Assembly: GCF_044704955.1 (NCBI RefSeq)
Contig: NC_091995.1
Location: 40,238,001 to 40,302,000, forward strand
Reading direction: 5' to 3'
Length of the DNA: 64,000 nt
Source of the DNA: Pristiophorus japonicus
Taxonomy: Eukaryota
Shown here: piece by piece, positions 6,999-41,451 of the stretch
How the letters are laid out: each line of letters starts with the position of its first letter
Numbering within the stretch: position 1 is the stretch's first letter
The notes under the pieces: generated by a model
The model's input: the letters and a program-made list of their open reading frames with translations, nothing else
What the model was told of the DNA's origin: nothing
The model's database searches: none
Position numbers and translations under genes: made by a program

Positions 6999-7259
6999 TT
7001 GATGTTTGGTTGTTCTGTTGCAGCCATCTATCAAGCTGTCCTTTGATGAGACCATGGAAACCAGCATAAGTGATTGTGTATTCATCCCAATAACTCTTGT
7101 CAAATGCTTCCGCTATCCATTGCTCTCTTGGAACTGTTATTTTCATATTGTTGTCGTAATAGACTATTTCACAGCCATCCAAACGTCCCAGAAAACTATA
7201 CCCTGGCAGATCAGTACTCCCATGGTTCAGGGTGTAGTAATATAGCAGAGAGTGAGACT
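6999..7259 (-). CDS. MHC class I heavy chain (non-classical), alpha1-domain exon (exon 2)
   Basis: Translation (E)SHSLLYYYTLNHGSTDLPGYSFLGRLDGCEIVYYDNNMKITVPREQWIAEAFDKSYWDEYTITYAGFHGLIKGQLDRWLQQNNQTS has class I alpha1 hallmarks (SHSL-Y7, D29, P47/W51, Y59-W60, N86-Q-T glycosylation site). 261 nt, phase 1/1, acceptor tgtttcag|AG, donor A|gtgagt. Confidence 0.93.
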
Positions 7260-8102
7260 CTGAAACATAATGAAACATATCCCCGTCATTGGCATATCAA
7301 ATATCAGAAATGTCAGTTTGCTCAACAGCTTGGGAAAGAATAATTGATTCAGAAAAATGAGAGATCACTGGATATTTTGTCACCACCCCTGTGTTAAAGC
7401 TTTGCAGAGAAGACAAAATGAGTCTTGATCGCAAATCTTATCCATTTACAAGAATATTCCCATTTTCGAAAAGAGAAAAAAATGTGGTGATTTGAATAAA
7501 TTACATAAGCTCCTCTCATTTGTAAATTTAAGTTATTAGTCCCATGACTGAACTGAGGTTTCTATGGTGATTTAGTGAGGAAGTGCGCCCAGCATTACGG
7601 TGCTAAGCCATGCAGAATCCATGCTTTGCATATGCCGAGTAATATACACCCAGCCCACTGGTTTTAGCAACATTAAAATTGGCCTCAGATTTCCTGAGCC
7701 ATGCTTCCTACTTCTTGGCTGCTCCACAGTCTCCCCTTCGGATAATTGTTCATGTGTGTGGTGAAGACAAACAGGGGAAAAGTTCCAACAGAAGAATACT
7801 CTAAGCCCCCACAAAAGGTAAAACTCTATCCCGGTGTTAATGGACACCATTAGGAAGGTAGGGTAAAAGTGAGAAAGATATGCTGCCCATTTTCTACTTG
7901 ACGCAATTGGTCAATGAGCATGTGAAGATGTTTACATTCCAACTCGAATATAACCTCAATAACTGAATATATTGCAACAGTGGCCATGCAGGAGTCAGGG
8001 TAGTTATGGGTTGCAGACTATTGAACTTTGGGGAAAAGAGTCCAGATACCACACGTACAATTGAGAAGTTACATAGATATTTGGTTTCTCTTGAAACAAT
8101 GA

Positions 8103-8398
8103 TGGGGCCGATTTTCAACTTGTGTCCCGGGAGTTAAACTGGCGTTGTGTATCAGCTACCAATTCCAGAAACCATTCGACTTCAAAAGAAACAAAATTGG
8201 GCAATTTCTACAATGTGCGGCCAATCTGAAAATCTACCTTGTCATAGGGTAATTTTCACTCTCGCCGCTGAGTGGAAATCTGTTGGTACAGGACCGGCCG
8301 CCAATTTGACACCCCACCTAATCTTGCTTTCCGTTAAATTGGGTGATGGACCCTCTATCCCAGCTTTCTACCCACCGGTGACAGTGTAAATCGGCCCC
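8103..8398. mobile_element. MITE-like element
   Basis: Terminal inverted repeat ggggccgattt ... aaatcggcccc. Confidence 0.6.
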
Positions 8399-8857
8399 TT
8401 TTGTCTGCCCAGTTGGGCAGATGTGGGGTGGAATTCACCTGAAGCCGGAGTGTGAAATGGGCGGTAAATGCTCCATGCAACTTTCCACTGAAGCCAATGA
8501 AGAGGAAAATCAGACGGGTTGTTTAATGAGGAACCAATCCACTTGCATGCGTTTCACAGCCCACCAAAGTTCATTTCTCTCCATAGATGCTATTTTACTG
8601 TGAAGGATTGATAGGGTATTCCATGCTCTATCAGACACGGGGTGGAAGGAGAACAGAAAATAGGTTTAAAAAGGGAGGCGGTTAGATGTTTTGGAAAAAG
8701 GCAGTGAGAGTCAGGAAACACATCCTGTCACACTACCATGTTGTTTTTCCTGATTTACTCTATCAAAACGGTTCATGGTATTGAACACCTCGATCAAATC
8801 TACTCTTTACCTTCATTGTTCTAAGGAGTACAATCCCAGATTCTCCAGTCTGCCACA

Positions 8858-9595
8858 TAGAACAGAGAACATAGAAAATAGGTGTAGGAGTAGGCCATTC
8901 GGCCTTCGAGCCTGCACCACTATTCAATAAGATCATGGCTGATCATTCACCTCAGTACCCCTTTCCTGCTTTCTCTCCATACCCCTTGATCCGTTTAGCC
9001 TTAAGGGCCATATCTAACTCCTTCTTGAATATATCCAATTAACTGGCATCAACAACTCTCTGCAGTAGAGAATTCCACAGGTTAACAACTCTCTGAGTGA
9101 AGAAGTTTCTCCTCATCTCAGTCTTAAATGGCTTAACCCTGCTTCTGGACTTCCCCAAAATCGGAAACATTCTTCCTGCATCTAACCTGTCCAGTCCCAT
9201 CAGAATTTTATATGTTTCTATGAGATCCCCTCTCATCCTTCTAAACTCCAGTGAATATAGGCCCAGTCGATCCAGTCTCTCCTTATATGTCAGTTCTGCC
9301 ATCCCGGGAATTAGTTTGGTGAACCTTCGCTGCACTCCCTCAATAACAAGAACGTCTTTCCTCAGGTTAGGAGACCAAAACTGAACACAATATTCCAGGT
9401 GAGGCCTCACCAAGGCCCTCTACAACTGCAGTAAGACCTCCCTGCTCCTATACTCAAATCCCCTAGCTATGAAGGCCAACATGCCATTTGCCTTCTTCAC
9501 CGCCTGCTGTACCTGCATGCCAACTTTCAATGACTGATGTACCATGACACCCAGGTCTCGTTGCACCTCCCCTTTTCCTAATCTGCTGCCATTCT
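8858..9595 (-). mobile_element. CR1 LINE 3' fragment
   Basis: ORF 9039-9413 VRPHLEYCVQFWSP...RRNFFTQRVVNLWN; acatagaa tail. Confidence 0.9.
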
Positions 9596-9752
9596 GTCCC
9601 CATCAAACACTCCTGAAGTCCATCATCCTTGGTATAATTCTAGTAAATCTCTCGCAATCTCTCGAAGGCCTTCCTAAAGTTTGCTGCCCAGAATTGAACA
9701 CAATATGGTAGATCAGGCCTAATCAGTGTTTTATGAAGGCTGAACATAATGT

Positions 9753-12700
9753 AGAATCATAGAATCATATACATTTACAGCACAGAAGGGGTCTATCTCG
9801 ACCCATTGTGTCCGCATCAGCTGACAAACAGCACTACAGCCTAATCCCACTTTCCAGCTTTTGGTCTGTAGCCTTTTAGGTTACGGCACTTCAAGTCCAT
9901 GTCCAAATACTTTTTTTAAGTGGTGAGGGTTTCTGCCTCTACCACCCTTTCAGGCGTTGAGTTCCATACCCCCACTGACCTCTGGGTGAAAGTATTTCCC
10001 CTCAAATCCCCTCTAAACCTCCTACCAATTACATTAAATCTATGCCTCCTCATTATTGACCACTCTGCTAAGGAAAATAGGTCCTTCCTATCCACTCTAT
10101 CTAGGTCCCTCATAAGTTTATACAACTCAATGAGGTCTCCCCTCAGCCTCCCCTGATCCAAGGAATACAAATCAAGCCTATCCAATCTTTCCCCATAGCT
10201 AAAATTCTCCACTCGCGGAAACATCCTCGTAAATATTCCCAGTGCAATCACGTCCTTCCTGTAATGCGGTGACATAGTACTCCAGCTGTGGCGTAACAAG
10301 TGTTTTGTACAGTTCAAGTATAACCCCGTTGCTCTTGTATTCCAAACCTTGGCTAATAAAGGCAAGCATTCCGTATGCCTTCTTAACCGCCCTATCAACC
10401 TGGCCTGCTACCTTCAGGGATATGTGGACATGCACTCCAAGATCCTTTTGTTCCTCTACACTTCTCTGTGTCCTACCATTAATGTGTATTCCCTTACCTT
10501 GTTAGACCTCCCCAAATGCATGACCTCACACTCCTCTGGATTGAATTCCATTTGCCACTGTTCTGTCCACCTGACCAGTTGATTGATATCTTCCTGCAGT
10601 CGGCAGCTTTCTTCTTCATTATCAACCACACAGCCAATTTTTGTATAATCTGCAAACTTCTTAATCATAGACCCTACATTCAAGTCAAATCATTGATGTA
10701 TACCACAAAAAGGTGGGACGTAGTACTGAGCCCTGCAGAACACCACTGGCAACAGCCTTCCAATCACAAACACACCCATCAACCATATCCCTTTGCTTCC
10801 TGCCTCTGAGCCACATTTGGATCCAACTTGCCACTTTCCCTTGGATCCCATGGGTGTTTACTTTCATGACCAGTCTGCCATGTGGGACCTTATCAAAAAC
10901 TTTGCTAAAATCTGTATACACTACATCAAATGCACGACCCTCATCGACCCTCCTTGTTATCTCCTCAAAAAATTCAATCAAGTTAGTCAGCCATTACCTG
11001 CTCTTAAAAAATTCATGCTGACTGGCCCCGATTAATCAGTGTCTTTCTAAAGGAAGATTTATCCTGTCCCTCTGAATTTTTTCCAGTAATTTTCCTACCA
11101 CCGAGGTTAGGCTGACTGGCCTATAATTACTTGGTCTAGCCCTGAGGAGAGACTGGATCGACTGGGCCTGTATTCACTAGAGTTTAGAAGAATGAGAGGG
11201 GATCTCATAGAAACATATAAAATTCTGACGGGACTGGATGCAGGAAGAATGAACTCGATGTTAAGGAAGTCCAGAACCAGGGGTCACAGTCTAAGGATAA
11301 GGGGTAAGCCATTTAGTTTCGAGATGAGGAGCTCTATAGATATGTGAAGAGAAAAAAATTAGTGAAGACAAATGTACGACCCTTGCAGTCGGATTCAGGT
11401 GAATTTATAATGGGGAACAAAGAAAAGGCAGACTAATTGAACAAATACTTTGGTTCTGTCTTCACAAAGAAAGACACAAATAACCTTCCGAAAGTACTAG
11501 GGGACCAAGGGTCTACTGAGAAGGAGAAACTGAAGGATAGCATTATTAGGCGGGAAATTGTGTTAGGGAAATTGATGGGATTGAAGGCCAATAAATCCCC
11601 ACGGCCTGATAGTCTGCATCCCAGAGAACTTAAGAAAGGGGCCCTAGAAATAGTGGATGCATTGGTGATCATTTTCCAACAGTCCATCGACTCGGGATCA
11701 GCTCCTATGGAGGGTAGCTAATGTAACACCACTTTTTAAAAAGGGAGGGCGAGAGACAGCGGGTAATTATAGACCGGTTAGCCTGACATCAGTGGTGGGG
11801 AAAATGTTGGAATCACTTATTAAGGATGAAATAGCAGCGTATTTGGAAAGCAGTGACAGGATCGGTCCAAGTCAGCATGAATTTATGAAGGGGAAATCAT
11901 GCTTGACAAATCTTCTAGAATTTTTTGAGGATGTAACTCGTAGAGTGGGAAGGGAGAACCACTGGATGTGGTGTATTTGGACTTTCAAAAGGCTTTTGAC
12001 AAGGTCCCACACAAGAGATTGGTGTGCAAAATCAAAGCACATGGTATTGGGGGTAATATACTGATGTGGATAGAGAACTGGTTGGCAGACAGGAATTAGA
12101 GAGTCGGGATAAACGGGTCCTTTTCAGAATGGCAGGCAGTAACTAGTGGAGTGCCACAGGGCTCAGTGCTGGGACCCCAACTCTTTACAATATATATCAA
12201 TGATTTGGATGAAGGAATTGAGTGTAATATCTCCAAGTTTGCAGATGACACTAAACTGGGTGGCGGTGTGAGCTGTGAGGTGGACGCTAAGAGACAGGTT
12301 AATTGAGTGGGCAACTTAATGGCAGATGCAGTATAACGTGGATAAATGTGAGGTTATCCACTTTGGGGGCAAAAACGCGAAGACAGAATATTATCTGAAT
12401 GGTGGCAGATTAGAAAAGGGAAATTGCAACAAGACCTGGGTGTCATGGTTCATCAGTCATTGAAAGTTGGCATACAGGTGCAGCAGGCGGTGAATAAGGC
12501 AAATGATATGTTGGCCTTCATAGCTAGGGGATTTGAGTATAGGAGCAGGGAGGTCTTACTGCAGTTGTACAGAGCCTTGGTGAGACCTCACCTGGAATAT
12601 TGTATTCAATTTTGGTCTCCTAATCTGAGGAAGGATGTTCTTGCTATTGAGGGAGTGCAGCGAAGGTTCACCAGACTGATTCCCGGGATGGCCGGACTGA

Positions 12701-15040
12701 CATATGAGGAGAGACTGGATCAACTGGGCTTTTATACATTGGAGTTTAGAAGGATGAGAGGGGATCTCATAGAAACATACAAGATTCTGACGGGACGGGA
12801 CAGGTTTGATGCGGGTAGATTGTTCCCGATGTTGGGGAAGTCCAGAACCAGGGGACACAGTCTTAGGATAATGGGTAGGTCATTTAGGACTGAGATGAGG
12901 AGAAACTTCTTCACTGAGAGAGTTGTTAACCTGTGGAATTCCCTGCTGCAGAGAGTTGTTGATGCCAGTTCATTGGATATATTCAAGAGGGAGTTAGATA
13001 TGGCCCTTACGGCTAAAGGGATCAAGGGGTATGGAAAGAAAGCAGGAAAGGGGTACTGAGGGAATGACCAGCCATGATCTTATCGAATGGTGGTGCAGGC
13101 TCGAAGGGCCGAAAGACCGACTCCTGCACCTATTTTCTATGTTTCTCCCCTTTATACAAAGGTTCAATGTTAGCAGTCCTCCAGTCCTCTGGCACCACAC
13201 CTGTAGCCAGAGAGGATTGGCAAATAATGGTCAGAGCCTCTGTTATTTCCTCTTTTGTTTTTCTTAACAACCTGGGATACATTTTATCCGGGCCTGGGGA
13301 TTCATCCACTTTAAAAGCTGCTATACCTCTTAATACATTCTCTCTCAATGTTTATTTCATCTAATATTTCACGCTTCTCCTCCCTGATTGCAATGTCTGC
13401 ATCGCCCCTCTCCTTTGTGAAAACAGACACAAAGTATTCATTAAAAACCATACCCAAATCTACCGCCTCCACACACAGATTAAAGTCTCAAATAGGCCCT
13501 ACTTTTTCTTGAGTTATCCTCTTGCTCATAATGTAGTTATAAAACATCTTTTGGTTTTCCTTGATTTTACTTACCAAACATTTTTCATGCTCTCTCTTTG
13601 TTTTCCTAATTTCCTTTTTAATTTCACCCCTACATTTTCTATATGCTAGGGTTTTTGCAATGCTTAGCCCTTGCTTTCTGTCATAAGCCTTCCTTTTTTC
13701 TTTATCCTACCCTGTATGCCCATTGACATCCAGGGAATTTCAGATTTGTTCGTCCTACTCTTTTTCTTTAAGGGAACATACTTGATCTGAACCCTTCGGA
13801 TCTCCTCCTTGAATGCCTCCCATTGCTCTGTCACTGATTTACCTGCCAGTAGCTGTTTCCAGCCCACCTTGGCTAAATCACCTCTCAGCTTAGCAAAATT
13901 GAGAACCTTTATTCTTGGTCTATCCGTTTCCATAACTACCCTAAATCTAACTAAATTATCACGAGCATCAAAATGCTCGCACTGAAAACGCTTCCAGCTG
14001 CCCAGCTTAATTCTCTAAAACTAAATCCAGAACTTTGCCCTCCCTTGTTGGGCTTGCTACATATTGGCTAAAAAATGTTCTCTTGAATGCATTTTAGGAA
14101 TTCTGCACCCTCTATACCTTCAATATTACTTCTGTCCCAGCTAATATTAGGGCAGTTCAAATCCCCTACTTTACTACGCTATAGTTTTTGCATTTCTCAG
14201 ATATTTGCCTACATATTTGCTCTTCTATCTCCCTCTGACTGTTTGGGGATCAATAGTACACTCCCAGCAGTGTGATCGCCTCTTTTTGTTCTTCAGTTCA
14301 ACCCACATGCCTCATTTGATGGTCCTTTTAACAGTTCATCCCTCCTCACAGCTGTAATTGATTCTTTAATAAGTACTTTTTTATCCCCTCTCTATCCCGT
14401 CTGAAAACCCTGCAATCGGGAATGTTGAGTTGCCATACCTGCCCTTCTTTCAGCCATGTCTCAGTAATAGCTATAATATCATACTCAAAAGTGTCTATTT
14501 GAGCTCTCAGCTCATCTGCCTTACTCCCTAGTTGTCCATTGTATCTTTGATTCCTCTGCCTTCCAAGTTTATTTTCTAATTTTCTGCTTTCAAATTCCAG
14601 CTTTGCTTCTCTCCCTTCTGAACCTACTCTCAGGTTCCCATCTCCATGCCAAGCTAGTTTAAACCCTCCGCAGCAACACTAGCAACCCCGCCCCCCCACC
14701 CCTGCGAGGATACTGGCCCCGGCTCTGTTGAGGTGCAACCCGTCTGGCTTGTATCCTCTTATGTCTGTACTCACTAGCACATGGCACCGGGAGCAATCCA
14801 GAGATTACTATCTTTGAGGTCCTGCTTTTTAATCTCTCTCCTAGCTCCCTAAAGTCTGCATGTAGGACCTCATCCCTCTTTTGATCTATGTCATTGGTCT
14901 CGATATGGACCACGCTCTCTGACTGTTCACCATCTCCCCCCAGAATGCCCTGCAGCTGCTTGGTGACATCCTTGACCCTGGCACCAGGGAGGCAACATAC
15001 CATCCTGGAGTCACTTCTGTGGCCCCAGAAATGCCTGTCT
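9753..15040 (-). mobile_element. Decayed CR1 LINE (ORF1 esterase to RT to tail), split by the + strand insertion at ~11143-13143
   Basis: Minus ORFs 14659-15003 (CLPGARVKDV, esterase), 13130-13348, 10685-10981, 9916-10398 are collinear pieces of one element. Confidence 0.85.
11143..13143 (+). mobile_element. Younger CR1 LINE nested in the element above, with a displaced copy of a 3' RT segment at its 5' end (~11143-11330)
   Basis: ORFs 11437-11721, 11792-12064, 12424-13059 (RT); ttttctatgtt tail. Confidence 0.9.
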
Positions 15041-15749
15041 GTTCCTTGCTTTTTTACTCTATTCCAATATTAATAAAGTCAAGGATTACATCTGTTCGTT
15101 TAACGCCATTCTCAACTTGTTCTGCCACCTTCAAAGATGTGTGTACATACAACCCCAGGTCTCTATGTTCCAACAGCCCCTTTAAAATAAATATTATGAA
15201 AAGCTGAAGCCCCACTAGTTGCATCCTGCCAAATTGAGACTCTGTCTCCTACCTCTTAACCAATTCCCTATCCAACCCCTGTGCTAACGTGGGATTGTGT
15301 CTCTTGGAGGATGAGGACAGTTTTGTCCCTGAGCAGGGCAGGAATAGGAAGCACAATTTCACCAGCTTTTATTCAGAAATGTGCAGTGTGCAGAATGTGT
15401 GTTTAACAAAGTCTTAACAGGGGAACACAATTTACTCTCAAATTGGGACTCCTGCAGGCAACAGCAAAGAGACTTTCATCCTATTGGACTTGGACTGGCT
15501 ATCAACTGAGCAACATATGATGAATAAACAATTGTAACAGTCATTATTTCTGCATAGATTTGTATTTCATAACTGCAGGTTATGGCCATTTTCTGCATAA
15601 GATTCTACAGGGAGGCATCTGGAAAACTACAAAACAACACAATAAAAAATGTAAGTGGAAACAGTACATATAACAGTCAAAAATATGTGAAACTTTTTTA
15701 TGGTATAGTGCTACCATATGTAGTGGTCTTGTTTGTCAGGACCCACATA

Positions 15750-18700
15750 ATGTAGTAATCTCAGGATTGCTAGCAGTGCCATGTGCTAGTCAGAGTAGGG
15801 ATCACAGGATAGCTCAGATGAATACATGGCTTGAGGAGTGGTGCAGCAGGGAGGGATTCAAATTCCTAGGACATTGGAACCGGTTCTGGGGGAGGTGGGA
15901 CCAGTACATACCGGACGGTCTGCACCTGGGCAGGACTGGAACCAAAGGGGGGAGTGTTTGCTAATGCTGTTGGGGAGGAGTTAAACTAATATGGCAGAGA
16001 GATGGGAACGAATGCAGGGAGACAGAGGGAAGTAGAATGGGGGCAGAAGCAAAAGATAGAAAGAAGAAAATGGAGGGCAGAGAAACCCAAGGCAAAAAGA
16101 AAAAAGGGCCACATTACAGCAAAATTTTAAAGGGGCAAAGTGTGTTGGAAAGACAAGCCTGAAGGCTCTGTGCCTCAATGCGAGGAGTATTCGGAATAAG
16201 GTGGACGAATTAACTGCGCAGATAGCAGTTAACGGATATGATGTAATTGGCATCACGGAGACATGGCTCCAGGGTGACCAAGACTGGGAACTCAACATCC
16301 AGGGGTATTCAATATTTAGGAAGGATAGACAGAAAGAAAAAGGAGGCAGGGTGGCATTGCTGGTTAAAGAGGAAATTAATGCAATAGTAACGAAGACCAT
16401 TAGCTTGGATGATGTGGAATCGGTATGGGTGGAGCTATGAATTTCCAAAGGGCAGAAAACGCTAGTGGGAGTTATGTACAGACCACCAAACAGTAATAGT
16501 AAGGTTGGGGACAGCATCAAACAGGAAATTAGGGATGTGTGCAATAAAGGTACAGCAGTTATCATGGGTGACTTTAATCTACATATTGATTGGGCTAACC
16601 AAACTGGTAGCAATGCGGTGGAGGAGGATTTCCTGGAGTGTATTAGGGATGGTTTTCTCGACCAATATGTCGAGGAGCCAACTAGAGGGCTGGCCATCCT
16701 AGACTGGGTGATGTGCAATGAGAAGAGAATAATTAGCAATCTTGTTGTGCAAGGCCCTTTGGGGAAGAGTGACCATAATATGGTAGAATTCTTTATTAAG
16801 ATGGAGAGTGACACAGTTAATTCAGAGACTAGGGTCCTGAACTTAAGGAAAGAAAACTTCGATGGTATGAGATGTGAATTGGCTAGAATAGACTGGTGAG
16901 TGGTACTTAAAGGGTTGATGGTGGATAGGCAATGGCAAACATTTAAAGATCACATGGATGAACTTCAACAATTGTACATCCCTGTCTGGAGTAAAAATAA
17001 AACAGGGAAGGTGGTTCAACCGTGGCTAACAAGGGAAATTAAGGATAGTGTGAAATCCAAGGAAGAGGCATATAAATTGGCCAGAAAAAGCAGCAAACCT
17101 AAGGACTGGGAGAATTTTATAATACAGCAGAGGAGGACAAAAGGTTTAATTAGGAGGGGAAAAATAGAGTATGAGAGGAAGCTTACTGGGAACATAAAAA
17201 CTGACTGCAAAAGCTTCTATAGATATGTGAAGAGAAAAAGATTAGTGAAGATTAATGTAGGTCCCTTGCAGTCAGATTCAGATGAATTTATAATGGGGAA
17301 CAAAGAAATGGCGGACCAGTTAAATAAATACTTTGGTTCTGTCTTCACGAAGGAAGACACAAATAACCTTCCGGAAATACTAAGGGACCGAAGGTCTAGT
17401 GAGAAGGAGGAACTGAAGGAAATCCTTATTAGCCAGGAAATAGTGTTAGGGAAATTGATGGGATTGAAGTCCGATAAATCGCCGGAGCCTGATAGTCTGC
17501 ATCCCAGAGTATTTAAGGAAGAAGCCCTAGAAATAGTGGATGCACTGGTGATCATTTTCCAACAGTCGATCGACTCTGGATCGGTTCCTATGGACTGGAG
17601 GGTAGCTAATGTAACACCACTTTTTAAGAAGGGAGGGAGAGAGAAGGTGGGTAATTATAGACCGGTTAGCCTGACACCAGTAATGGGGAAAATGTTGGAA
17701 TCAATTATTAAAGATGAAATAGAAGCACATGTGGAAAGCAGTGACGGGATCGGTTCAAGTCAGCATGGATTTATGAAAGGGAAATCCTGCTTGACAAATC
17801 TTCTGGAATTTTTTGAGGATGTAACTGGTAGAGTGGACAAGGGAGAACCAGTGGATGTGGTGTATTTGGATTTCAAAAGGCTTTTGACAAGGTCCCGCAC
17901 AAGAGATTGGTGTGCAAAATTAAAGCGCATCGTAATTGGGGTAATATACTGACGTAGATAGAGAACTCGTTGGCAGACAGGAAGCAGAGAGTCGAGATAA
18001 ATGGGTCCTTTTCAGAACGGCAGGCAGTGACTAGTGGAGTGCTGCAGGGCTCAGTGCTGGGACCCCAGCTCTTTACAATATACATTAATGATTTGGATGA
18101 GGGAATTGAGTGTAATATCTCCAAGTTTGCAGGTGACACTAAGCTGGGTGGCAGTGTGAGCTGTGAGGAGGATGTTAAAAGGCTGCAAGGTGACTTGGAC
18201 AGGTTAGGTGAGTGGGCAAATGAGTGGCAGATGCAATATAATGTGGATAAATGTGAGGTTATCCACTTTGGTGGCAAAAAGACGAAGGCAGAATATTATC
18301 TGAATGGCGGCAGATTAGGAAAAAGGGAGGTGCAACGAGACCTGGGTGTCATTGTACATCAGGCAAATGGTATGTTGGCCTTCATAGCTAGGGGATTTGA
18401 GTATAAGAGTAGGGAGGTCTTACTGCAGTTGTACAGGGCATTGGCGAGGCCTCACCTGGAATATTGTGTTCAGTTTTGGTCTCCTAATCTGAGGAAGGAC
18501 ATTCTTGCTATTGAGGGAGTGCAGCGAAGGTTCACCAGACTGATTCCCGGGATGGCAGGACTGACATATGATGAGAGACTGGATCGACTGGGCCTGTATT
18601 CACTGGAGTTTAGAAGGATGAGAGGGGATCTCAGAAACATATAAAATTCTGACGGGACTGGACAGGTTAGATGCAGGAAGAATGTTCCCGATGTTGGAGA

Positions 18701-19020
18701 AGTCCAGAAGCATGGGTCATAGTCTAAGGATAAGGGGTAAGCCATTTATGACTGAGATGAGGAGAAACTTCTTCACTCAGAAAGTTGTTAACCTGTGGAA
18801 TTCCCTACCGCAAAGAGTTGTTGATGCCAGTTCATTGGATATATTCAAGAGGGAGTTAGATATGGCCCTTATGGCTAAAGGGATCAAGGGGTATGGAGAG
18901 AAAGCAGGAAAGGGGTAGTGAGGTGAATGATCAGCCATGATCTTATTGAATGGTGGTGCAGGCTCGAAGGGCCAAATGGCCTACTCCTGCACCTATTTTC
19001 TATGTCTCTATGTTTCTATA
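15750..19020 (+). mobile_element. Long CR1 LINE copy: end of ORF1, endonuclease, RT, 3' UTR; interrupted by stops and frameshifts
   Basis: YDVIGITETW, GDFN, SDHN (APE endonuclease); 350-aa and 224-aa RT pieces (QGSVLGP, KFAGDTKL); ttctatgtctctatgtttcta tail. Confidence 0.95.
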
Positions 19021-19021
19021 A

Positions 19022-19680: not shown

Positions 19681-19844
19681 TGTCACTGATTAACCAGTGG
19701 CTGTTGGGTGTTGTACCTAGAAATCTTTACCCAACAGGAACGTGGACTTGTTTTCATTCCCTTATCCAAATAAACTAATTTCTAAAATTAAATTTACATG
19801 CTGATTCTTATAAGATTAGAATTTGGATAAAACCAGTTCCATTT

Positions 19845-26845: not shown

Positions 26846-27021
26846 ATGGGCTGCGTTTAGTGAGTCCTGTAACTGTTACAGACTCCCTCAGTCTCGGGTC
26901 TGGAACTTAATCCTGTTTTACTGAGTGCAGCGTCTATAACTGTTACAGGGAGTCATTCTCAACTCTCTCTTTCTCTCTTTCTCTCTGTTCCTTCATCTTG
27001 CTGTCTTTCATCCGTATTTCA

Positions 27022-27330: not shown

Positions 27331-27483
27331 CATTCATTTTGTCTTTCTCATTCTCCTTGTCTCTCTGGATCTCTGTCCTACGTTTTGTCTGTCTCTCTTT
27401 CCCCCTCTTTCTCTGTCTCTCTTTCCCTCTCTCTCTACCTCGTTTCTGTGTACTTGTATCTCTTTATCCCTATCTCTCGCATG

Positions 27484-27518
<35 letters not shown>

Positions 27519-29578: not shown

Positions 29579-29791
29579 TGTTATGTCTTAAATAAAGCAA
29601 TGTGACTGAGTACTGTAGACGTGAGTAAGTGTGACCTTAGTCTCTTTATTCTGACTCCAGAGTGCTGGCACAGCATGGGAGGCCTGCTTATATGCAGCGC
29701 CCCCAAGAGATATTGGGATCCTTTGGGACTCCAACAGATGCGCCCTCTGGTGGCGGTAGAATTCTGGTTACGAGGTATTGCATACATAACA
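29579..29791. mobile_element. Solo LTR (213 bp), Gypsy-type
   Basis: TGTTATGT...ACATAACA inverted termini and 5-bp TSD GTTAC (29574-29578, 29792-29796); interrupts LINE RT sequence. Confidence 0.88.
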
Positions 29792-31423
29792 GTTACCTCC
29801 TCAAAAAATTCAAACAGTTTAGTCAGACACGATCTTCCCTTAACAAATCCGTGCTGACTGTCCCTAATTAATCCTTACCTTTCCAAATGCAGATTTATCC
29901 TGTCTTTTCCAATAATTTTCCCGCCATTGGGGTTAGACTGACAGGACTGTAATTACTTGGCCTATCCCTTTCTCCCTTCTTAAACAAGGGTACTACATTA
30001 GTAGTCCTCCAATCCTCCGGCATCATGCCCAGATCCAAAGAGGACTGGAAAATGATGGTCAAGGCCTCTGCTATTTCCTCTTTTACTTCGCTCAACAGCC
30101 TGCGATGCATTTCATCCGGGCCTGGGGACTTATCTACTTTCAAAGCTGCTAAACCCCTTCCTCTCTCGCTATATTTATTTCATCCAGAATATCACGCTCC
30201 TCCTCGACAGCAGTATCTGCATTGCCCCTTTCCTTTGTGTAAAGAGTTGCAAAGTATTTGTTAAGAACCCTCCCAACATCTTCTGCCTCTGCACAAAGAT
30301 TACCCTCATAGTCTCTAATAAGCCCTACCCTTTCTTTAGTTACCCGCTTACTCTTAATATATTTAGAGAACATTTTAGGGTTTTCCTTAATTTTACTGGC
30401 CAAGAATTTCTCATGCTCTTTCTTAGCATTCCTAATATCCTTTTTAATTTTGCCTCTTAACTTTCTATATTCCTCTAAAGATTCTATAGTATTTAGCCGT
30501 TGATATATGATATAAGCATCCCTTTTTTTCTTAATCCTCCACTGTAAGTCTTGAGACATCTAGGGGGCTCTAGAATTATTTTTCCCAGTCTTTTTCTTTA
30601 CGGGCACATGTTTGGCCTGAGCCTTCCGGATCTCCTCCTTAAATGCCTCCCACTTTTCCAACACTGATTTACCCACAAGTAGCTGTATCCAGTCCAAATC
30701 ACTCCTTAACTTAGCAAAATTAGCTTTTCCCCAATTCTGAACTTTTATTCCAGGTCTATTCTTGTCCTTATCCATAACCAACTTGAATCTAACTGAATTA
30801 CGGTCACTGGCACCCATGTGCTCGCCCACTAATACCCCTTCAACTTGCCCAGCTTCATTCCCCAAAACTAAATCCAAAACTGCCCCCTTTCATGTTGGGC
30901 TTGCTACATACTGACTAAAAAAGTTCTTTTGAATGCATTTCAAGAATTCCGCACCCTCTATACCCTTCACACTAAATTTCTCCCAATCAATGTTAGGACA
31001 GTTAAAATCCCCGACTATTATGACCCTGTGGTTTTTGGATTTCACAGCAATTTGCCTTCATATTTGCGCCTCTATCTCCCTCCCACTGTTTGGGGGTCGA
31101 CATTACACGGCCAGCAATTTGATCGCCTTTTTTTTGTTTTTCAATTCGACCCATATTGCCTCATTTGATGATCCCTCTAACATATCATCCCTCCTCACCG
31201 CTGTAATATTTTCTTTAATCAGTACCGCAACCACACCCACCCCCCCCTCCCCCCGCCTTTTTACCCCCCTCTCTATCTTGTGTAAAAATCCTGTAGCCAG
31301 GAATATTGATCTGCCAAACCTGCCCCTCTTTCAGCCATGTTTCTGTAATGGCTATAATCTCATACTCCCAAGTGTCTACTTGTGCTCTTAGCTCCTCCGC
31401 CTTATTCGCTATACTCCTTGCAT

Positions 31424-33600
31424 TAGAAACTTAGAAACATAGAAAATAGGTGCAGGAGTAGGCCATTCCACAGGTTCACCACTCTCTGGGTGAAGAAGTT
31501 TCTCTTCATCTCGGTCCTAAATGGCTTACCCCTTATCCTTGGACTGTGACCCCTGGTTCTGGACTTCCTCAACATTGGGAACATTCTTCCTGCATCTAAC
31601 CTGTCTAAGTCCATCAGAATTTTAAACATTTCTATGAGATCCCCTCTCACTCTTCTGAATTCCAGTGAATACAAGCCCAGTTGATCCAGGCTTTCTTGAT
31701 AGGTCAGTCCCGCCATCCCGGGAATCAGTCTGGTGAACCTTTGCTGCACTCCCTCAATCGCAAGAATGTCCTTCAAGTTAGGAGACCAAAACTGTACACA
31801 ATACTCCAGGTGTGGCCTCACCATGGCCCTGTACAACTGTAGTAACACCTCCCTGCCCCTGTACTCAAATCCCCTTGCTATGAAGGCCAACATGCCATTT
31901 ACTTTCTTCACCGCCTGCTGTACCTGCATGCCAACCTTCAATGACTGATGTACCATGACACCCAGGTCTCGTTGCACCTCCCCTTTTCCTAATCTGTCAC
32001 CATTCAGATAATAGTCTGTCTCTCTGTTTTTACCACCAAAGTGGATAACCTCACATTTATCCACATTATACTTCATCTGCCATGCATTTGCCCACTCACC
32101 TAACCTATCCAAGTCACTCTGTAGTCTCATAGCATCCTCCTCGCAGCTCACACTGCCACCTAACTTAGTGTCATCCGCAAATTTGGAGATACTATATTTA
32201 ATCCCCTCGTCTAAATCATTAATGTACAATGTAAACAGCCGGGGCCCCAGCACAGAACCTTGTGGTACCCCACTAGTCACTGCCTGCCATTCTGAAAAGT
32301 ATCCATTTACTCCTACTCTTTGCTTCCTGTCTGCCAACCAGTTCTCAATCCACGTCAGCACACTACCCCCAATCCCATGTGCTTTAACTTTGCACATTAA
32401 TCTCTTGTGTGGGACCTTGTCGAAAGCCTTCTGAAAGTCCAAATACACCACATCAACTGGTTCTCCCTTGTCCACTCTACTGGAAATATCCTCAAAAAAT
32501 TCCAGAAGATTTGTCAAGCATGATTTTCCTTTCACAAATCCATGCTGACTTGGACCTATCATGTCACCATTTTCCAAATGCACTGCTATGACATCCTTAA
32601 TAATTGATTCCATCATTTTACCCACTACCGATGTCAGGCTGACCGGTCTATAATTCCCTGTTTTCTCTCTCCCTCCTTTTTTAAAAAGTGGGGTTACATT
32701 GGCTACCCTCCACTCCATAGGAACTGATCCAGAGTCTATGGAATGTTGGAAAATGACTGTCAATGCATCCGCTATTTCCAAGGCCACCTCCTTAAGTACT
32801 CTGGGATACAGTCCATCAGGCCCTGGGGATTTATTGGCCTTCAATCCCATCAATTTCCCCAACACAATTTCCCGACTAATAAGGATTTCCCTCAGTTCCT
32901 CCTTCTTACTAGACCCTCTGACCCCTTTTATATCCGGAAGGTTGTTTGTGTCCTCCTTAGTGAATACCGAACCAAAGTACTTGTTCAATTGGTCTGCCAT
33001 TTCTTTGTTTCCCATTATGACTTCCCCTGATTCTGAGTGCAGAAGACCTACGTTTGTTTTTACTAACCTTTTTCTCTTTACATATCTATAGAAACTTTTG
33101 CAGTCCGTCTTAATGTTCCCTGCAAGCTTCCTATTTTCCCTGCCCTAATCAAACCCTTTGTCCTCCTCTGCTGAGTTTTAAATTTCTCCCAGTCTCCGGG
33201 TTCGCTGCTATTTCTGGCCAATTTGTATGCCGCTTCCTTGGCTTTAATACTATCCCTGATTTCCCTTGATAGCCACGGTTGAGTCACCTTCCCTTTTTTA
33301 TTTTTATGCCAGACATGGATGTACAATTGTTGTAGTTCATCCATGCAGTCTCTAAATGTCTGCCATTGCCCATCCACAGTCAACCCCTTAAGTATTATTT
33401 GCCAATCTATCCTAGCCAATTCACACCTCATATCTTCAAAGTTACCCTTCTTTAAGTTCTGGACCATGGTCTCTGAATTAACTGTTTCATTCTCCATCCT
33501 AATGTAGAATTCCACCATATTATGGTCACTCTTTCCCAAGGGGCCTCACACAACGAGATTGCTAATTAATCCTCTCTCATTACGCAACACCCAGTCTAAG
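31424..33600 (-). mobile_element. Young 5'-truncated CR1 LINE with an uninterrupted 530-aa RT ORF
   Basis: ORF 31423-33015 with [33 protein letters not shown]; internal deletion joins the ORF to the tail. Confidence 0.95.
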
Positions 33601-34344
33601 ATTAAAGTATGTACCATTCAGCACAGGAAGACCTCCTTGCTTACTACATACTAAACCCTGTTTCCTCTGTCTTACAGATTCACTTTCTAGATTCTTGCTA
33701 TCCAATTTCAGCTTTACTTCCTTCCCTTTTGAATTCATTCTCAGATTCCCATCCCCCTGCCAAGCTAGTTTAAACTCTCCCCAACAGCATAGCAAAACAT
33801 TAAATTAGAGGCTGGAAATCTGTCAGGTAAATCTAGTTTCTCAACCTGAAAGACTTTCACTTTTAAAGTTGTGCTGGGACCTGAGATCAAATGTTGTATC
33901 CATTCAGACAATGCTGCATTTTGCAACTCGCTGTTAACTGTGCAGACACAGGAGATGGGATTGTTCATTGTAGCCTCTGGCCTCACCATTCAGGCATGGG
34001 TCGTGGCAGCTACACCACTTCACCCTGCCGCCTCCCCCATCACCCCCACAGGCCTAAAAGTGACCATGTCCCGATTTCCAGGCGTTTTAGACCAAACGGC
34101 TAAGATGAGGACCACTGCTGACTTCAGCGCCCCTGGTGCAGACCTGCAGGTCGCATCATGAAGTTCTACAACATCAGCCCATGATTCTTTGATCATGTAT
34201 TTCAATGGTGGAAAATTCCTCCAGACTGAGGGTGCAGAATTTCCTAATCTGCAGATTGGGCATGATTCAGCAGTGGGAAATTCCTGTCATATTTGACTGA
34301 GGTAGTGAGCAATAGGGCTGAGGAAAGCAAATAAACCCAGCTTT

Positions 34345-34880
34345 CAACTCACTCCTGGCCGGCCTTCCACATTCCTCACTACGTAAACTTGAAGTCATGC
34401 AAAACTCAGCAGCCCATGTACTAACCCGCACCGTCAAGATCACACCCCTGTGCTTTCTGACCTACATTGGCTCCCAGTTAAACAATGCCTCGATTTCAAA
34501 ATTCTCATCCTTGTTTACAAATCACTCCATGGACTTGCCCCTCCCTATCTCTGTAATCTTTTTCAGCCTCACAATCCCACAAGATGTCTGCGCTCCTCAT
34601 ATTCTGACCTCTTGAACATCCCTCATACTGCTCAACCATCGGCGGACATGCCTTCAGCTGCCTGGGCCCTAAGCTCTGGAACCCCTTCCCTAAAACTCTC
34701 TGCCTCTCTACCTCTCTCTCCTCCTGAAGACTCTCGTTAAAACTTACCACTTTAAACAAGCTTTTGAACTTCTGCCTTAATTTATTCTGTAGCTCGGTGT
34801 CAAATGTATCTGTTTGTCTGTAGCACTGTTGTGAAGTGCCTTGGGACGTTTTACTATGTTAAAGGTGCTATGTAAATAAA
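34345..34880 (+). mobile_element. L2-clade LINE 3' fragment
   Basis: QNSAAHVLT and LSDLHWLPVKQCLDFKILILVYKSLHGLAPPYL. Confidence 0.85.
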
Positions 34881-35274
34881 AGTTAATATTATTATTAATA
34901 ATCACCAGCCCATGATTCAGAGGGTGGCAGTGTGAGTATCGGCTGAGTATAGCATCAGTCTGTCCTGTGGTGGCCCCAGGGTTGATTTGCCCAATGGATA
35001 CAGTGCTGGATAGTTGACCAGAGTAGCACAAGGGATTGTGAATAATTTGATATTGTCTGTAATTCGAATCCAATTGTTGAAAAGGAGAAGGAAAGGGTGA
35101 AACGTTGTGGGAAGTGGAATTTAATCCATCATCATCACAGGATGTGCCTTTGGTGATAACAGAGCCATTGGACTCCCCCCAAAGTGTGGGGGAAATTACC
35201 GGTTTTCTCCTGGACTTTCTGCAGAAACGGTCGCCTTTTTAGTCACTGAAGGGATTGAGTGTTGAGGAAATGTC

Positions 35275-35650
35275 ATAAGAACATAAGAAATAGGAGCAGG
35301 AGTAGGCCATTTGGCCCCTTGAGCCTGCTTCGCCATTTAATAAGATCATGGCTGATCCAAACATGGACTCAGCTCCATTACCCCACCCACTCACCATAAC
35401 TCTTTATTCCCTTATCGCTCAAAAATCTGTCTATCTCCGCCTTAAATATATTCAATGACCCAGCCTCCACAGCTCTCTGGGGCAGAGAATTCAACAGATT
35501 TACAACTCTCAGAGAAGAAATTCCTCCTCATCTCAGTTTTAAATGGGCCGCCCCTTATTCTAAGACTATGTCCCCGAGTTTCAGTTTCCCCTATGAATGG
35601 AAATATCCTCTCTGCATCCACCTTGTTGAGCCCCCTCATTATCTTATAAT
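35275..35650 (-). mobile_element. CR1 LINE 3' end
   Basis: TRGHSLRIRGGPFKTEMRRNFF; cataagaa tail. Confidence 0.88.
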
Positions 35651-35950
35651 GTCCTGAAAGGAATTCCCCCTGTTGGTATAAACTCTTCAGCAACCACCCT
35701 GACCCTGTCCCAGGTTTCAAGGTAATGACACCGCGTGGCAGACTATTTCCTTCTGTGGGTGTCGCTAGGAAGGCTGGTAGTTATTGTCCAATAGCAGGGT
35801 GTTTGGACATCGCAGAGGGCAGCTAAGAGCCCTCAGGTCGGTGTGGGATTGTAGTCACATGTCAGCCAGACCCGACAGGGACAGGAGCTTTGAGAGGTCC
35901 TGAGGTGGTGAAGAGCACTGTAGAAATGCAAGTTTCTCTTTCTCTCTCAC

Positions 35951-38900
35951 TAATATGTATTTACTATACAGTATAAATGCACACGAGGCCCATACTTGAG
36001 CGAAGATCACTCTGTGACCAGTTACCTTTATTAACAAGACCTCAAGAGACAGACGGTGGGTGGAGCTTCCCCTTTTATACCTGAAAGTCCAGGTTAGGAG
36101 TGTCTCCCACAAGTTCGCCCCCTGTGGTCAGTGTTCTCAAGGTGTACAACTTAGGTCAGCTTATACATGGGTTACAATGACAGTTGAATACATGACATCA
36201 TCTCCCCCCCAAAGTCTTATTGGGATCACAGGTTAAGTCACCCTGGTGGTTTATGCTCCCTTATAGAGCGCCTGAGTTGGGGCTCCAGTTGTTGGGCGCT
36301 GGCCTGAGTGTCTTTTGTTTGCGGTGCCTCAGGCCTGTCCAGACTGCCTACAGTGACTGGGCTCTCCTCCACTTGGTTCCGGTGTTCGGTCACCTGTGGT
36401 GGAGTAAACTCTACGTCGTGTTCTTCCTCTGCTTCTTCTATGGGGTTGCTGAACCTCCTTTTAGTTTGATCCACGTGTTTGCGGCAGATTTGTCCATTTG
36501 TAAGTTTAACTACCAAAACCCTATTCCCCTGTTTGGCAATCACAGTGCCTGCAAGCCATTTGGGCCCTGCAGCGTAATTAAGGACAAGAACAGGGTCATT
36601 GACATCAATGCATCTTGCCCTCGCATTCCTGTCACGGTAGTCACATTGTGACTGACGCCTGCTCTCAACAATTTCTTTCATATTAGGGTGTATAAAGGAT
36701 AACCTGGTTTTGAGCGTCCTTTTCATTAGCAGCTAATCAGGTGAAACCCCTGTGAGTGAGTGTGGTCGGGATCTATTGGCCAACAGGAGGCGTGATAAGT
36801 AGCTTTGTAGGGAACCCCCTTGGTTTCTGAGCATCCCCTGTTTAATTATCTGCACTGCTCATTCCGCCTGGCCGTTTGAGGCCGGCTTGAATGGTGCCGT
36901 TCTGACATGGTTGATTCCATTGCCTGCCATGAAGTCCTAGAAGTCAGTGCTTGTGAAGCATGGGCCACTGTCGCTGACCAAGATGTCCAGTAGACCATAG
37001 GTGGCGAACATTGCCCGAAGACTTTCTACCGTGGCAGAGGATGTGCTTGAATTTAAAATGGCACATTCAATCCATTTGGAGTAGGCGTCTACTACAACAA
37101 AAAACATTTTTTCCATGAAAGGTCCTGCGTAGTCCACATGAATGCATGACCATTGCTTGGCGGGCCAGTACCAGAGGCTAAGGGGATCTTCCCTGGGTGC
37201 GTTGCCCAGCTGAGCACGCGTGTTGCACCTGTGAACACAAAGTTCCAGGTCTGCATCTATTCCTGGCCACCAAATGTGTGACCTGGCAATTGCCTTCATC
37301 ATGACAATGCCCGGGTGCTCATTGTGAAGTTCTCTGATAAACACCTCTCTGCCCATCTGGGGCATGACTACTCAGTTTCCCCACATTAGGCAATCGGCCT
37401 GAATCGAGAGTTCATCCTTGCGCCTATTAAACGGTTTAAACTCCTCAGGGCATGCCCCGTACGTGGCTGCCCAGTCCCCATTCAGGACACATTTCTTAAC
37501 TAAAGACAGTAGCGGGTCTTTATTTGTCCAGGCGTTAATCTAACGGCCTGTCACAGGTGAGCCTTCGCTTTTGAAAGCTTCAACCACCATGACCATCTCA
37601 GCATCATGCTCAGCTACCCCCTCAATGGTGGCTATTGGTAGCCTGCTGAGTGCATCGGCACAGTTTTCAGTGCCCGGTCTGTGTAGCAGCTCTAACAGCG
37701 TGCTCAATTTGGGAAGAAAGTTGCCAAAATAGTTCAGGAGCCCTAGGAACGAACGCAGCTCCGTCATGTTACGGGATCTGGGTGTTCTCTGGATCGCTTC
37801 AGTTTTGGATGCAGTAGGTCTGATGCCGTTTGCTGCTACCCTCCTCCCCAGGAATTCTACCTTTGGAGTTAAGAAGACGCACTTCACCTTTTTCAGTCGC
37901 AGCGCTACCCGGTCCAGTCTAGCACCTCCTCCAGGTTATGGAGGTGTTCTTCAGTATCGCGACCCGTGATGAGGATGTCGCCTTGAAAAACCACCATCCT
38001 TGGAATCGACTTGAGGAGGCTTTCCATATTTTGCTGAAAGATCGCGGCGGCCGAATGAATACCGAACAGACATCTGTTATACTCAAATAACTCCTTGTGT
38101 TTCATGATGGTGGTCAACTTCTTCGACTCACTCGCCAGCTCCTGGGTCATGTAAGCTGAGGTCAGGTCCAATTTTGAAAAAAGTTTGCCACCGGATAACG
38201 TCGCAAAGAGGTCCTCTGCTCTCAGTAGTGGGTACTGGTCTTGGAGTGACACCCGATTGATGGTGGCCTTGTAATCGCTACATATCCTGACCGACCCATC
38301 CGCCTTGAGCACCGGCATGATCAGGCTCGCCCAGTCACAGAATTCGACTGGCGAGATAATGCCTTCCCTCAGCAGGCGGTCCAATTCGCATTCTAACTTT
38401 TCCCGCATCACGTACGGCACCGCTCTGGCCTTGTGGTGTACAGGCCTGGCGTCCGGATTGATGTGAATCACTACCTTGGTCCCCATGAAAGTGCTGATGC
38501 CGGGTTGAAATAATGAGTCAAATTTGTCCAGGACCTGCGAGCATGATACTCGCTCCACAGAAGAAATTGCATTGACATCGCCCCATTTCCAGTTCATGAC
38601 AGCAAGCCAACTCCTTCCCAGTAGTGCGGGACCGTCCCACGGGACAATCCAGAGTGGCAACCTGTTCTCCGAATCTTTGTGGGTCATGACTACCATGGCG
38701 CTGCCTAGCACCGGAATGATCTCCTTTGTATATGTCCGTAGCAGTGCGTCAATCGGCAATAATTTTGGCCTCCTGGCCTTGGACACCCACAACGTTTCAA
38801 AATGTTTGATACTCATCAGGGACTGGCTGGCCCCCATTGTCCAGCTCCATTAATACTGGGATGCCATTGAGGAGCACTTTCCTCATTGTCGGTGGCGTCC

Positions 38901-40162
38901 TGGTATATGAACTGTATAGGTACTCCACGTGAACTCGCTGAACTTCAGCTTCCAGCGATTTCCCCAGTATTCATTTGGCCTCGTAGGGCTTACATTGGGC
39001 CCGTCCTCCTTGTACATCAACCTGGCTGCAGGCTTCCTGCACATACGCGCCAAGTGACCGCTGACGTTGCAGTTTCTGCAAGTATATTGCTGATACCTGC
39101 AAGCTCTGGCTGGGTGTTTGCCTCCACACCTCCAGCATGAGATGGAGGCCCCATTGTTGGAAACAAAAGGTCCATTACCAGTTGATCATCTCTGACTGTC
39201 TCTGTAACTCTCCTTAAGCGCACCATTAACATGTGTTGATGGTCCCATTACTGGCCGCATTGTCCATTGCGATGGCATGAATCACCGTTCAACTAGCCAT
39301 TGTCTCTGTTGAATTCCCCCTTTGGGTGACTGCATGCTGGGGTATATCTGATTGCCCTTGTATGCCTAGAGAACTGTGTGCCGCGTTAACAATGTTGACT
39401 CCCTGGTCGTTTGCCGCATTTGAGCCAAGATTTTTGCCATAAATCATTTGGTCTCTTCCTCCCCTGAGATAATTGTCTGGGCTATCAGAGCTGCCGCTTC
39501 CAAGGTCAAGTCTTTGGTCTCAATTAGTTTCCTGAAAACCCCAGCGTGTCCGATGCCCTCAATAAAAATAATCTCGCAGCATCTCTGCTCTGCATGCATC
39601 TGGGAGCTTACATAGGCTCACCAGTCGCCGGAGATCTGCCATGAAGTCTGGAACGCTTTGCCCTTCTCGCCGCTGGTGTGTAAAACCGATGTCTCGCCAT
39701 GTGCATGCTGCTCGCCTGTTTAAGGTGTTCCCTGATCAACTTACTGAGCTCTTCGAATGTCTTGTCCGCCGGCTTCTCTGGCTAGAAGATCCTTCATCAG
39801 GGAGTACGTCCTGGATCCACAAACCGTCAGGAGATGAGCCCTGCGTTTGTCGGCCGAATCCTGTCCCAACCATTCGTTAGTGACAAAACTTTGCTGTAGT
39901 CTCTCAATAAAGTCGTCCCAATCATCACCAACACAGTACCTCTCTTCTGTGCTGCTAGTGGCCATGCTCGCGTGGTTTAAATCCCAGTTTCCCGTCGCCA
40001 ATAATATGTCCTTACTATACAGTACAAATGCACACGAGGCCCATACTTGAGAGAAGATCACTCTGTGACCAGTTACCTTTATATACAAGTGGTCAGTGTT
40101 CTCAAGGTGTACAACTTAGGTCAGCTTATACATGGGTTACAATGACAGTTGAATACATGACA
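35951..40162 (-). mobile_element. Ty3/Gypsy LTR retrotransposon, defective (gag, protease, RT, integrase; RNase H region deleted)
   Basis: 3' LTR 35951-36197, 5' LTR 40002-40162 (internally deleted), TSD CTCAC, PBS TGGCGAC at ~39994-40000, polypurine tract next to 36198; RT FSKLDLTSAY; integrase HPGIVMMK..WWPGID..HVDYAGP..VVDAYSKW. Confidence 0.95.
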
Positions 40163-40169
40163 CTCACAC

Positions 40170-41430
40170 ACACAGCGAGTACAGGAGGTGCGGAAAGTTG
40201 CCTCTGGTGCTCACCCCGTACTGCTCCAGGCTGTGAGCAGCAGGCGCCGGTCAATTCTCAGTCAGTGGGGCGGATCTTGCCTTTGTGCGACAGTGTAAAA
40301 CGGGGGAGAACCAGTCGGCAGCACCTTGTACATCGCTCCAGGGTGTTACTGCCATCGAACTCAACAGAAGGGGGAAACGGGGAGAAAGATGGGAAACGGG
40401 CGGGACTCGCTGTCGCCCACTTTACCCCATCGCACGGAGTCAACATTCCCCGAGTGGAACTGCACATGCTGGGAATCTGATCAAAGCAGCAAATGTTGCA
40501 AATATGCAGCGGGTCAGTCTGAGAGAAACAGATGGGTAAACTCTGGGAGATCAAACTTCACCAGAACCTGTACGGGTCGCCTCAAAGCTTCATCCTGACG
40601 CGAATCGGAAGGTGTAAAAGAGGTTCCCGGGTCGCTGGCACCCGTCCCCCCTGCGATTAAAGTCAATCCCTCCCCTTGTATGTTGAATGATTTGTCCGAT
40701 TGATCGGGAGGTTTAAAAGGTTTTTCAAGTTCTCAGGCGGTGCAATGAAGCATTTAAAGTGCAGCTTCCCGCCGGCTGGAGTTACACTGAAACAAACAGG
40801 TGTGAACTCGAAGCGACCGAGCCGCGTTCCTGCAGGAGTCTCGCCGCTGGACTCCTGGTCACTCGGGTGGTCAGGCCGGGACTGGGATCGTAGGTATACT
40901 GAAACTTCCCTCCCCGCAAGCCCGCTGTGCGGGAAGACACTGTCAGTCCCCCTCCGGCTGACCAGGGTCAACAAAGAAGCTGCCCCAATAACTGGACGGC
41001 AATGTCAGGCTATCTGGAGAGTGATGGACTTCATCTAATCCAACCAAAGGGAGAAGCGAGGCTGAGAAGCAGGATGGAGATTGCAATCCGGCTCCATCGC
41101 TACACTGCCTCACACACTGGCCCGTCTCCCTCTGTGAAACACCTGATGTAACCCACAGACCTGCCCGTCCCAGTCTAAGATCAGAGGGTGAGCCTGTCGA
41201 CATTGAATGGTGCAGCGGGAACCGGCTACTCACCAGATAGGGCCGCTTGGAGGCAGTGGAAGCTCAGTACAAGTGACAGAAACATGCCGTCCCGTCCGTT
41301 CGCCGCCTCTCCCAGTGACAAGCCGAGACTGAGCGCTTTGAATGGACCCGAGCCCAGCTTCACTCACAAGTGGTCGGTGCGGGAGCTCAGCGTCCAATCG
41401 CAATAAAACATGTGGATCCGTCACTGGTTA
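40170..41430. promoter_or_regulatory. CpG-rich island over the promoter, leader exon and start of intron 1 of the class I gene
   Basis: Visibly high CpG density in non-repeat sequence compared with the CpG-depleted flanks; not formally computed. Confidence 0.7.
41234..41285 (-). CDS. Signal-peptide (leader) exon 1 of the MHC class I gene: MFLSLVLSFHCLQAALS
   Basis: ggcATG start (G at -3), 17 codons + 1 nt, hydrophobic core ending A-L-S, consensus phase-1 donor G|GTGAGT; joins in frame to the exon at 7259 (G+AG = Glu). Confidence 0.85.
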
Positions 41431-41451
41431 TCAAGGACTGTCCCTGAACTG
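41394..41451 (-). promoter_or_regulatory. MHC SXY-type promoter module: X1 (CCTTGATAACCAG, 41424-41436), X2 (TGACG, 41419-41423), Y box (ATTGG, 41394-41398), possible S box (CAGTTCA, 41445-41451)
   Basis: Order, orientation and 20-nt X2-to-Y spacing fit MHC enhanceosome promoters; Y box lies 108 nt upstream of the leader ATG. Confidence 0.78.

Follow-up and report, generated by a model that had tools for sequence, protein, structure and literature searches.

In sharks, UDA, UFA and UGA have been listed as single-copy class Ib genes in a 2025 review, in which UFA and UGA are described as CD1-like and linked to the major histocompatibility complex (MHC) (PMC12562908). A CD1-like binding region had been mentioned for UFA before (PMC10751288), and a crystal structure and mass spectrometry, reported in the review as a personal communication, suggest that UFA and UGA bind lipids similar to the ligands of human CD1d (PMC12562908). 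The locus treated here lies in a stretch of 64,000 nt of contig NC_091995.1 from the Japanese sawshark Pristiophorus japonicus, a squalomorph; this whole stretch, which holds no N, is called the window below, and positions are counted from its first letter. With a probability of roughly 0.85, the window carries exons 1 and 2 of a P. japonicus class Ib heavy-chain gene of the UGA lineage, split by a 34-kb first intron that is filled with retroelements. The parts of this transcript model are as follows.

41234-41285, minus strand: leader, the coding part of exon 1 (52 nt; sequence read)
7260-41233, minus strand: intron 1 (33,974 nt; retroelements and low-complexity DNA)
6999-7259, minus strand: alpha1 exon (261 nt, 87 codons, phase 1 on entry and exit)

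Leader, alpha1 exon and their join

On the minus strand, the leader at 41285-41234 reads ATG TTT CTG ... CTA TCT G, that is, 17 codons (MFLSLVLSFHCLQAALS) and one spare base, which is the first base of codon 18 and stands directly before the intron at the donor G|GTGAGT. The acceptor of the alpha1 exon at 7259 is preceded by a polypyrimidine tract and AG (TTTCATTATGTTTCAG); the exon is translated from 7257 as SHSLLYYYTLNHGSTDLPGYSFLGRLDGCEIVYYDNNMKITVPREQWIAEAFDKSYWDEYTITYAGFHGLIKGQLDRWLQQNNQTS, encodes (E)SHSLLYYYTLNHG...LQQNNQTS and ends at 6999 with the donor A|GTGAGT. The spare G of the leader and the AG of alpha1 together form a glutamate codon, so that the join is in phase 1, and canonical splice sites are found on both introns at the exon edges. 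Rereading of the sequence thus confirmed the leader boundary and the in-phase splice onto the 261-nt exon that a preliminary description of this DNA had proposed, and the boundaries and splice sites bear out the class I heavy-chain layout named there, with a short phase-1 leader and an alpha1 exon of ~87-90 codons (87 in this case). Furthermore, the alpha1 exon alone scores 33.6 bits with the Pfam domain MHC_I (PF00129; E 3.8e-8), above the cut-off of 28.3, has class I chains among its PDB matches, and keeps all 13 of the 13 alpha1 residues that are invariant in the family, including the N-glycosylation Asn.

When the alpha1 exon was searched against 1.84 billion representative proteins, a public protein of 343 aa was found to be 100% identical to it at residues 19-104. 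This protein (UniParc UPI00398F1195, here P0001) is a "class I histocompatibility antigen, F10 alpha chain-like" of Pristiophorus japonicus; it starts with MFLSLVLSFHCLQAALSESHSLLYYYT, and its residues 1-17 are the same as the leader in the window. Each exon served as a separate query, and wherever the joined form is used it is this database protein. Exactly the proposed join is therefore already public, and the leader, which had been called unannotated, lacks annotation solely in the open-reading-frame (ORF) track available to the preliminary description. P0001 runs from the leader through alpha1, alpha2 and an Ig-like alpha3 domain to a hydrophobic membrane-spanning segment, which is followed by a cytoplasmic tail; Pfam recognizes MHC_I (PF00129) and C1-set (PF07654) in it, an AlphaFold2 model shows the Ig domain and a transmembrane helix at 292-329, and all 65 of the 65 family-invariant residues are retained in its complete open frame. 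Its alpha3, transmembrane and tail parts were checked on the public protein alone, their exons being outside the window. In a tblastn search of P0001 against the window, the matches were confined to the leader, alpha1 and a single alpha1-like relic, and no alpha2, alpha3 or transmembrane exon was found in the 64 kb. These exons must then be located to the left of the window, at a distance of more than 7 kb downstream from alpha1; this position had been predicted, and P0001 supplies their sequence.

The leader is also recognizable as that of a family. The signal peptides of 21 family members align column by column, as in MFLSLVLSFYRVRTALSE of Heterodontus, MFLFALLSFYRFQRVESE of Heptranchias and MILFILLSFFHVQGALAG of skates, with L3, L7, F9 and Q13 invariant or nearly so. 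A profile built from the orthologues of other species, with every sawshark sequence left out, was run against all six frames of the window and matched 41363-41229 on the minus strand with 20.5 bits (E 6.9e-5); no other match exceeded 7.0 bits. This sole match means that the 64 kb contain one family-type leader, on the correct strand and upstream of alpha1, and that no competing leader lies inside intron 1. In a sawshark paralogue, P0164, a nearly identical leader is joined to the alpha1 of that protein. In addition, three of the skate proteins are encoded on contigs of 1.4-3.5 kb that were assembled by Logan, and an open frame of 334 aa on such contigs suggests that these are spliced transcripts.

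Relation to UGA and to other class I molecules

The closest solved structure to P0001 is PDB 9CH4, "Crystal structure of shark nonclassical MHC class I, UGA" (released 2026-03-18), whose chain A matches with 465.7 bits (E 1e-138) and 72% identity over 268 residues without a gap, whereas the other solved class I chains reach at most 189 bits at ~35% identity among the matches listed. An AlphaFold2 model of P0001, made from a 30-sequence alignment (pLDDT 84), likewise retrieved 9CH4 first in a fold search, with Z 27.0 and a root-mean-square deviation of 2.7 Å over 267 residues at 72% identity. The two proteins thus have the same fold and equal domain length. The crystallised UGA is itself closest to a Stegostoma protein, with a score of 568 bits and, by reading of the printed alignment, some nine in ten residues identical; this places its origin in an orectolobiform shark, inside the UGA-like set but in another shark order than the sawshark.

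When the full protein was run in a word-indexed search, between one and three close relatives were obtained for each species, in the sharks Heterodontus, Heptranchias, Chiloscyllium, Stegostoma, Cetorhinus, Scyliorhinus and Mustelus and in the rays Rhinoraja, Pristis, Leucoraja, Hemitrygon, Mobula and Amblyraja. P. japonicus has three public copies (P0001, P0002 and P0164), so that the copy number is low, as described for UGA, with a small sawshark-specific expansion. A maximum-likelihood tree of 44 sequences (LG+C20+F+G4, 200 bootstrap trees) was calculated from a set that comprised the Triakis classical UAA alleles but held no named references for UBA, UCA, UDA, UEA or UFA. One branch of this tree has 19 UGA-like shark and ray sequences on one side (support 100/99; 200 of 200 bootstrap trees), among them the Stegostoma protein to which 9CH4 is closest, and the Triakis UAA alleles fall outside that clade. 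Within the 19, the three sawshark proteins group together (99/96), and the internal branches around them are short (0.03-0.06), as is typical for species-level duplicates. The earlier assignment to a non-classical MHC class I gene is therefore supported by the Pfam MHC_I domain, the exon layout and membership of the UGA clade. As for linkage, no MHC framework gene is present in the 64-kb window; markers of the class Ib cluster are brd2 and b2m to one side of it and hsd17b8, rxrb, slc39a7 and col11a2 to the other (PMC10751288).

The sister of the UGA clade in the tree (100/99) is the Leucoraja protein XP_055486430 (P0005), which has the alpha1 motifs LNHG and GFHGI-KG in common with the sawshark protein; its alpha1 is only 44% identical, and it is set apart by long branches (0.53 and 0.81). 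P0005 is possibly UFA, which is a guess. P0005 and the UGA-like P0157 (XP_055486429) have consecutive accessions on the same 127-kb Leucoraja erinacea contig, which suggests that a UGA-like gene and a gene of the sister lineage are neighbours in this skate.

Classical shark UAA (6LUP; alleles of Triakis scyllium) has the same domain and exon layout as the sawshark gene but is related to P0001 at 35-36% identity (180 bits). Eight positions, 7, 59, 84, 143, 146, 147, 159 and 171, make up the conserved set that holds the peptide termini in classical molecules. In an alignment to 6LUP, five of them are kept in the sawshark protein (Y7, Y59, K146, W147 and Y171) and three are replaced (84 by Q, 143 by F and 159 by L), so that the full set of eight anchors expected of a classical class Ia molecule is not present; the same three replacements hold across the family alignment. 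As read from the alignment, these replacements fit a nonclassical molecule that would not clamp peptide termini in the classical manner, although they are no proof of lipid binding by themselves.

MR1 gives the second-best PDB scores among the matches listed (182-189 bits), and some UGA-like orthologues are named "MR1-like" by NCBI. The top MR1 rows are fusion chains of beta2-microglobulin and MR1, in which the beta2-microglobulin part adds ~37-42 bits; the MR1 part alone reaches ~146-148 bits, below the 180 bits of shark UAA. The identity of ~33% is a likeness at the general class I level, with no sign of orthology. With regard to CD1, the groove and bound lipids of UGA and UFA are reported to be CD1-like (PMC12562908, PMC10751288), but the sequence of the sawshark protein is nearer to MR1 and classical class I. 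No CD1 chain occurred among the 61 PDB matches to alpha1 (E up to 10) or among the best 60 of 479 PDB matches to the full protein (E <= 1e-20), so the likeness to CD1 is one of function and structure, by report, and not of sequence membership.

From its lineage, the product of the sawshark gene would be a type I membrane glycoprotein in which the groove formed by alpha1 and alpha2 sits on an alpha3 domain of the C1-set type, and it would pair with beta2-microglobulin. Instead of diverse peptides, it may present a conserved non-peptide ligand, reportedly a lipid as in CD1d.

The cytoplasmic tail is where the sawshark copies differ from the rest of the family. In 14 of 21 family sequences, from sharks and rays, a motif Y-x-x-V/I follows directly after the basic stop-transfer residues, in the forms YNAV, YNVI, YQNI and YENI. 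This YxxPhi tail resembles the endosomal sorting signal of CD1b, CD1c and CD1d. Unlike most orthologues, all three sawshark models (P0001, P0002 and P0164) are without the tyrosine of this motif. Several isoform models of Leucoraja erinacea (P0152, P0153, P0155 and P0178, from LOC129716032) consist of a UGA-like part fused to a G-protein-coupled receptor (PF00001), annotated as "probable G-protein coupled receptor 139"; these fusions look like read-through mis-annotation of adjacent genes.

Promoter, orphan exon and competing explanations

Two further features are found upstream of the leader.

41394-41451, minus strand: putative proximal promoter (RFX-like site, TGACG half-site, and ATTGG, an inverted CCAAT, 18 nt on)
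42406-42665, minus strand: orphan alpha1-like exon relic (~1.1 kb upstream of the leader, outside the transcript model)

The putative promoter lies 109-166 nt upstream of the ATG. When TGACG (a cAMP response element half-site) followed after 14-22 nt by ATTGG was taken as the test pattern, two pairs were counted in the window against 0.74 expected, and at least two occurred in 21 of 100 shuffles. Of the MHC-type promoter of the preliminary description, the motifs at a fitting position stand, but the motif pair is no rarer than chance in the window; a promoter function is plausible and is favoured by position alone. Similarly, the described CpG island proved to be a modest enrichment: 41150-41460 has a GC content of 0.57 and a CpG observed/expected ratio of 0.72, at the 90th percentile of 310-nt windows, where the window mean is 0.42. 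From ~41459 upstream, the promoter is adjoined by the 3'-tail repeat of a long interspersed nuclear element (LINE), which leaves at most ~175 nt of non-repeat sequence before the ATG. This repeat (41459-41837, minus strand) has copies at 511-944, 5934-6157 and elsewhere, and it is represented by hundreds of short, deep contigs in two runs of 2024, X1 and X2, whose kind is not on record.

Of the words sampled from 6900-7400, shares of 0.43 and 0.37 occur in the runs X1 and X2, close to what the exon makes up of this interval; these values are compatible with coverage of the exon only, as from RNA, but do not prove it. On 40900-42900, the contigs of both runs are confined to the LINE-tail repeat at 41436-41837, and none lies over the leader or the orphan exon, a coverage hole that proves nothing.

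The frame of the orphan exon is open, and 260 nt lie between its AG and GTAAGT, a length that puts it out of phase for alpha2. It resembles the real alpha1 at 41% (BLASTP) or 38% (tblastn) protein identity and 68% DNA identity, with a dN/dS of 0.52, and it departs from the family at 7 of the 13 invariant alpha1 positions, among them the glycosylation Asn (N101T). It has no Pfam match, and no leader-like ORF was found upstream of it by the leader profile in the six-frame search of the window. The orphan exon is probably the relic of a local duplication. Its use as an alternative alpha1 cassette was considered and rejected, given its place upstream of the promoter, its length of 260 nt, the loss of 7 of 13 invariants and the lack of its own leader.

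Several points weigh against a functional UGA-lineage gene in the form proposed here. The junction from 41234 to 7259 received no RNA support from the X1 and X2 contigs on 40900-42900, and P0001 may itself be a prediction, the evidence behind it not being visible. The sawshark tail without YxxPhi may mean either that the 3' end is mis-modelled or that the copy is functionally altered; since the tail exons are outside the window, the loss of the tyrosine may be a modelling error. Lastly, the case for lipid binding by UGA consists of a PDB title and of a personal communication that a review quotes.

Some of these points could be accommodated if the gene were a decaying or non-expressed duplicate, one of three paralogues with intact exons that is silent or mis-spliced over the 34-kb intron. 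The leader uncovered by contigs of the two runs, the LINE insertion that cuts the promoter short, the neighbouring relic as a sign of duplication and decay at the locus, and the modelled tail without the family motif would all agree with such a fate. Nevertheless, it is unlikely, as the holes in contig coverage carry no weight, the splice sites of both introns are canonical, and the 343-aa model is complete and open with every family-invariant residue in place.

The suggestion in the preliminary description that the gene could represent a new, divergent class Ib sublineage is very improbable. An alpha1 just ~35% identical to classical class I, the absence of the position-84 anchor and the small clade formed by the three sawshark copies could be taken in its favour, but the gapless 72% identity to the UGA structure and the nesting of these copies, on short branches, in a strongly supported clade of sharks and rays refute it at the level of lineage, as far as sequences and tree can tell. 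Nesting well within a described lineage had been named beforehand as the outcome that would remove the novelty, and it is what the phylogeny returned, the lineage being UGA. A public model of the gene exists, and UGA is a named lineage with a solved structure.

The least probable alternative is that the leader belongs to a different transcript, spliced to the orphan exon or to another exon in the intron while alpha1 has an undetected 5' exon: the distance of 34 kb is unusually long and a second alpha1-like exon is close by, but on the coding strand the orphan exon precedes the leader and so cannot be its splice partner, no other leader-profile match exists in the window, and both the paralogue P0164, with its nearly identical leader, and P0001 use a leader-alpha1 join.

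Intron 1 of the UGA-lineage model contains LINE-type reverse transcriptases in both orientations and the pol gene of a long terminal repeat (LTR) retroelement, with reverse transcriptase and integrase. Neither tblastn nor the leader profile detected any other class I exon or leader-like ORF in it. The Pfam-supported elements are as follows.

16900-18641, plus strand: RVT_1 ORF
31426-33015, minus strand: RVT_1 ORF
36940-37365, minus strand: Integrase_H2C2 and rve
37908-38837, minus strand: RVT_1 ORF

The intervals 36238-38837 and 47013-48966, both on the minus strand, hold related decayed copies of an LTR-type pol (reverse transcriptase, integrase zinc-binding domain and core), the first within intron 1, the second upstream of the gene. 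Between 20500 and 24000 lies a GC-rich low-complexity block with a GC content up to ~0.8 and the highest CpG observed/expected ratio of the window; long open Gly/Arg/Ser or Pro/Ser repeat frames run through it on both strands, with no Pfam match.

Consequences for the UGA family

Given a public gene model and a lineage that is named and crystallised, the locus adds detail to the annotation and not a new kind of molecule. The detail consists of the 34-kb first intron, the leader, the truncated promoter and the relic exon. In addition, a squalomorph member widens the sampling of UGA, and the 72% identity to an orectolobiform protein of equal domain length speaks for conservation.

A tentative and rather doubtful proposal is that a normally single-copy, CD1-like UGA gene has expanded in the sawshark to three copies, beside an alpha1 relic, and that all three copies have lost the YxxPhi endosomal-sorting tail. 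If real, the loss of the tail would be what makes the sawshark copies most interesting, and it would amount to a lineage-specific change in where the UGA molecule samples its ligand. UGA and its sister lineage have been put forward as the shark counterparts of CD1; if they are, lipid presentation would date to the origin of adaptive immunity in jawed vertebrates.

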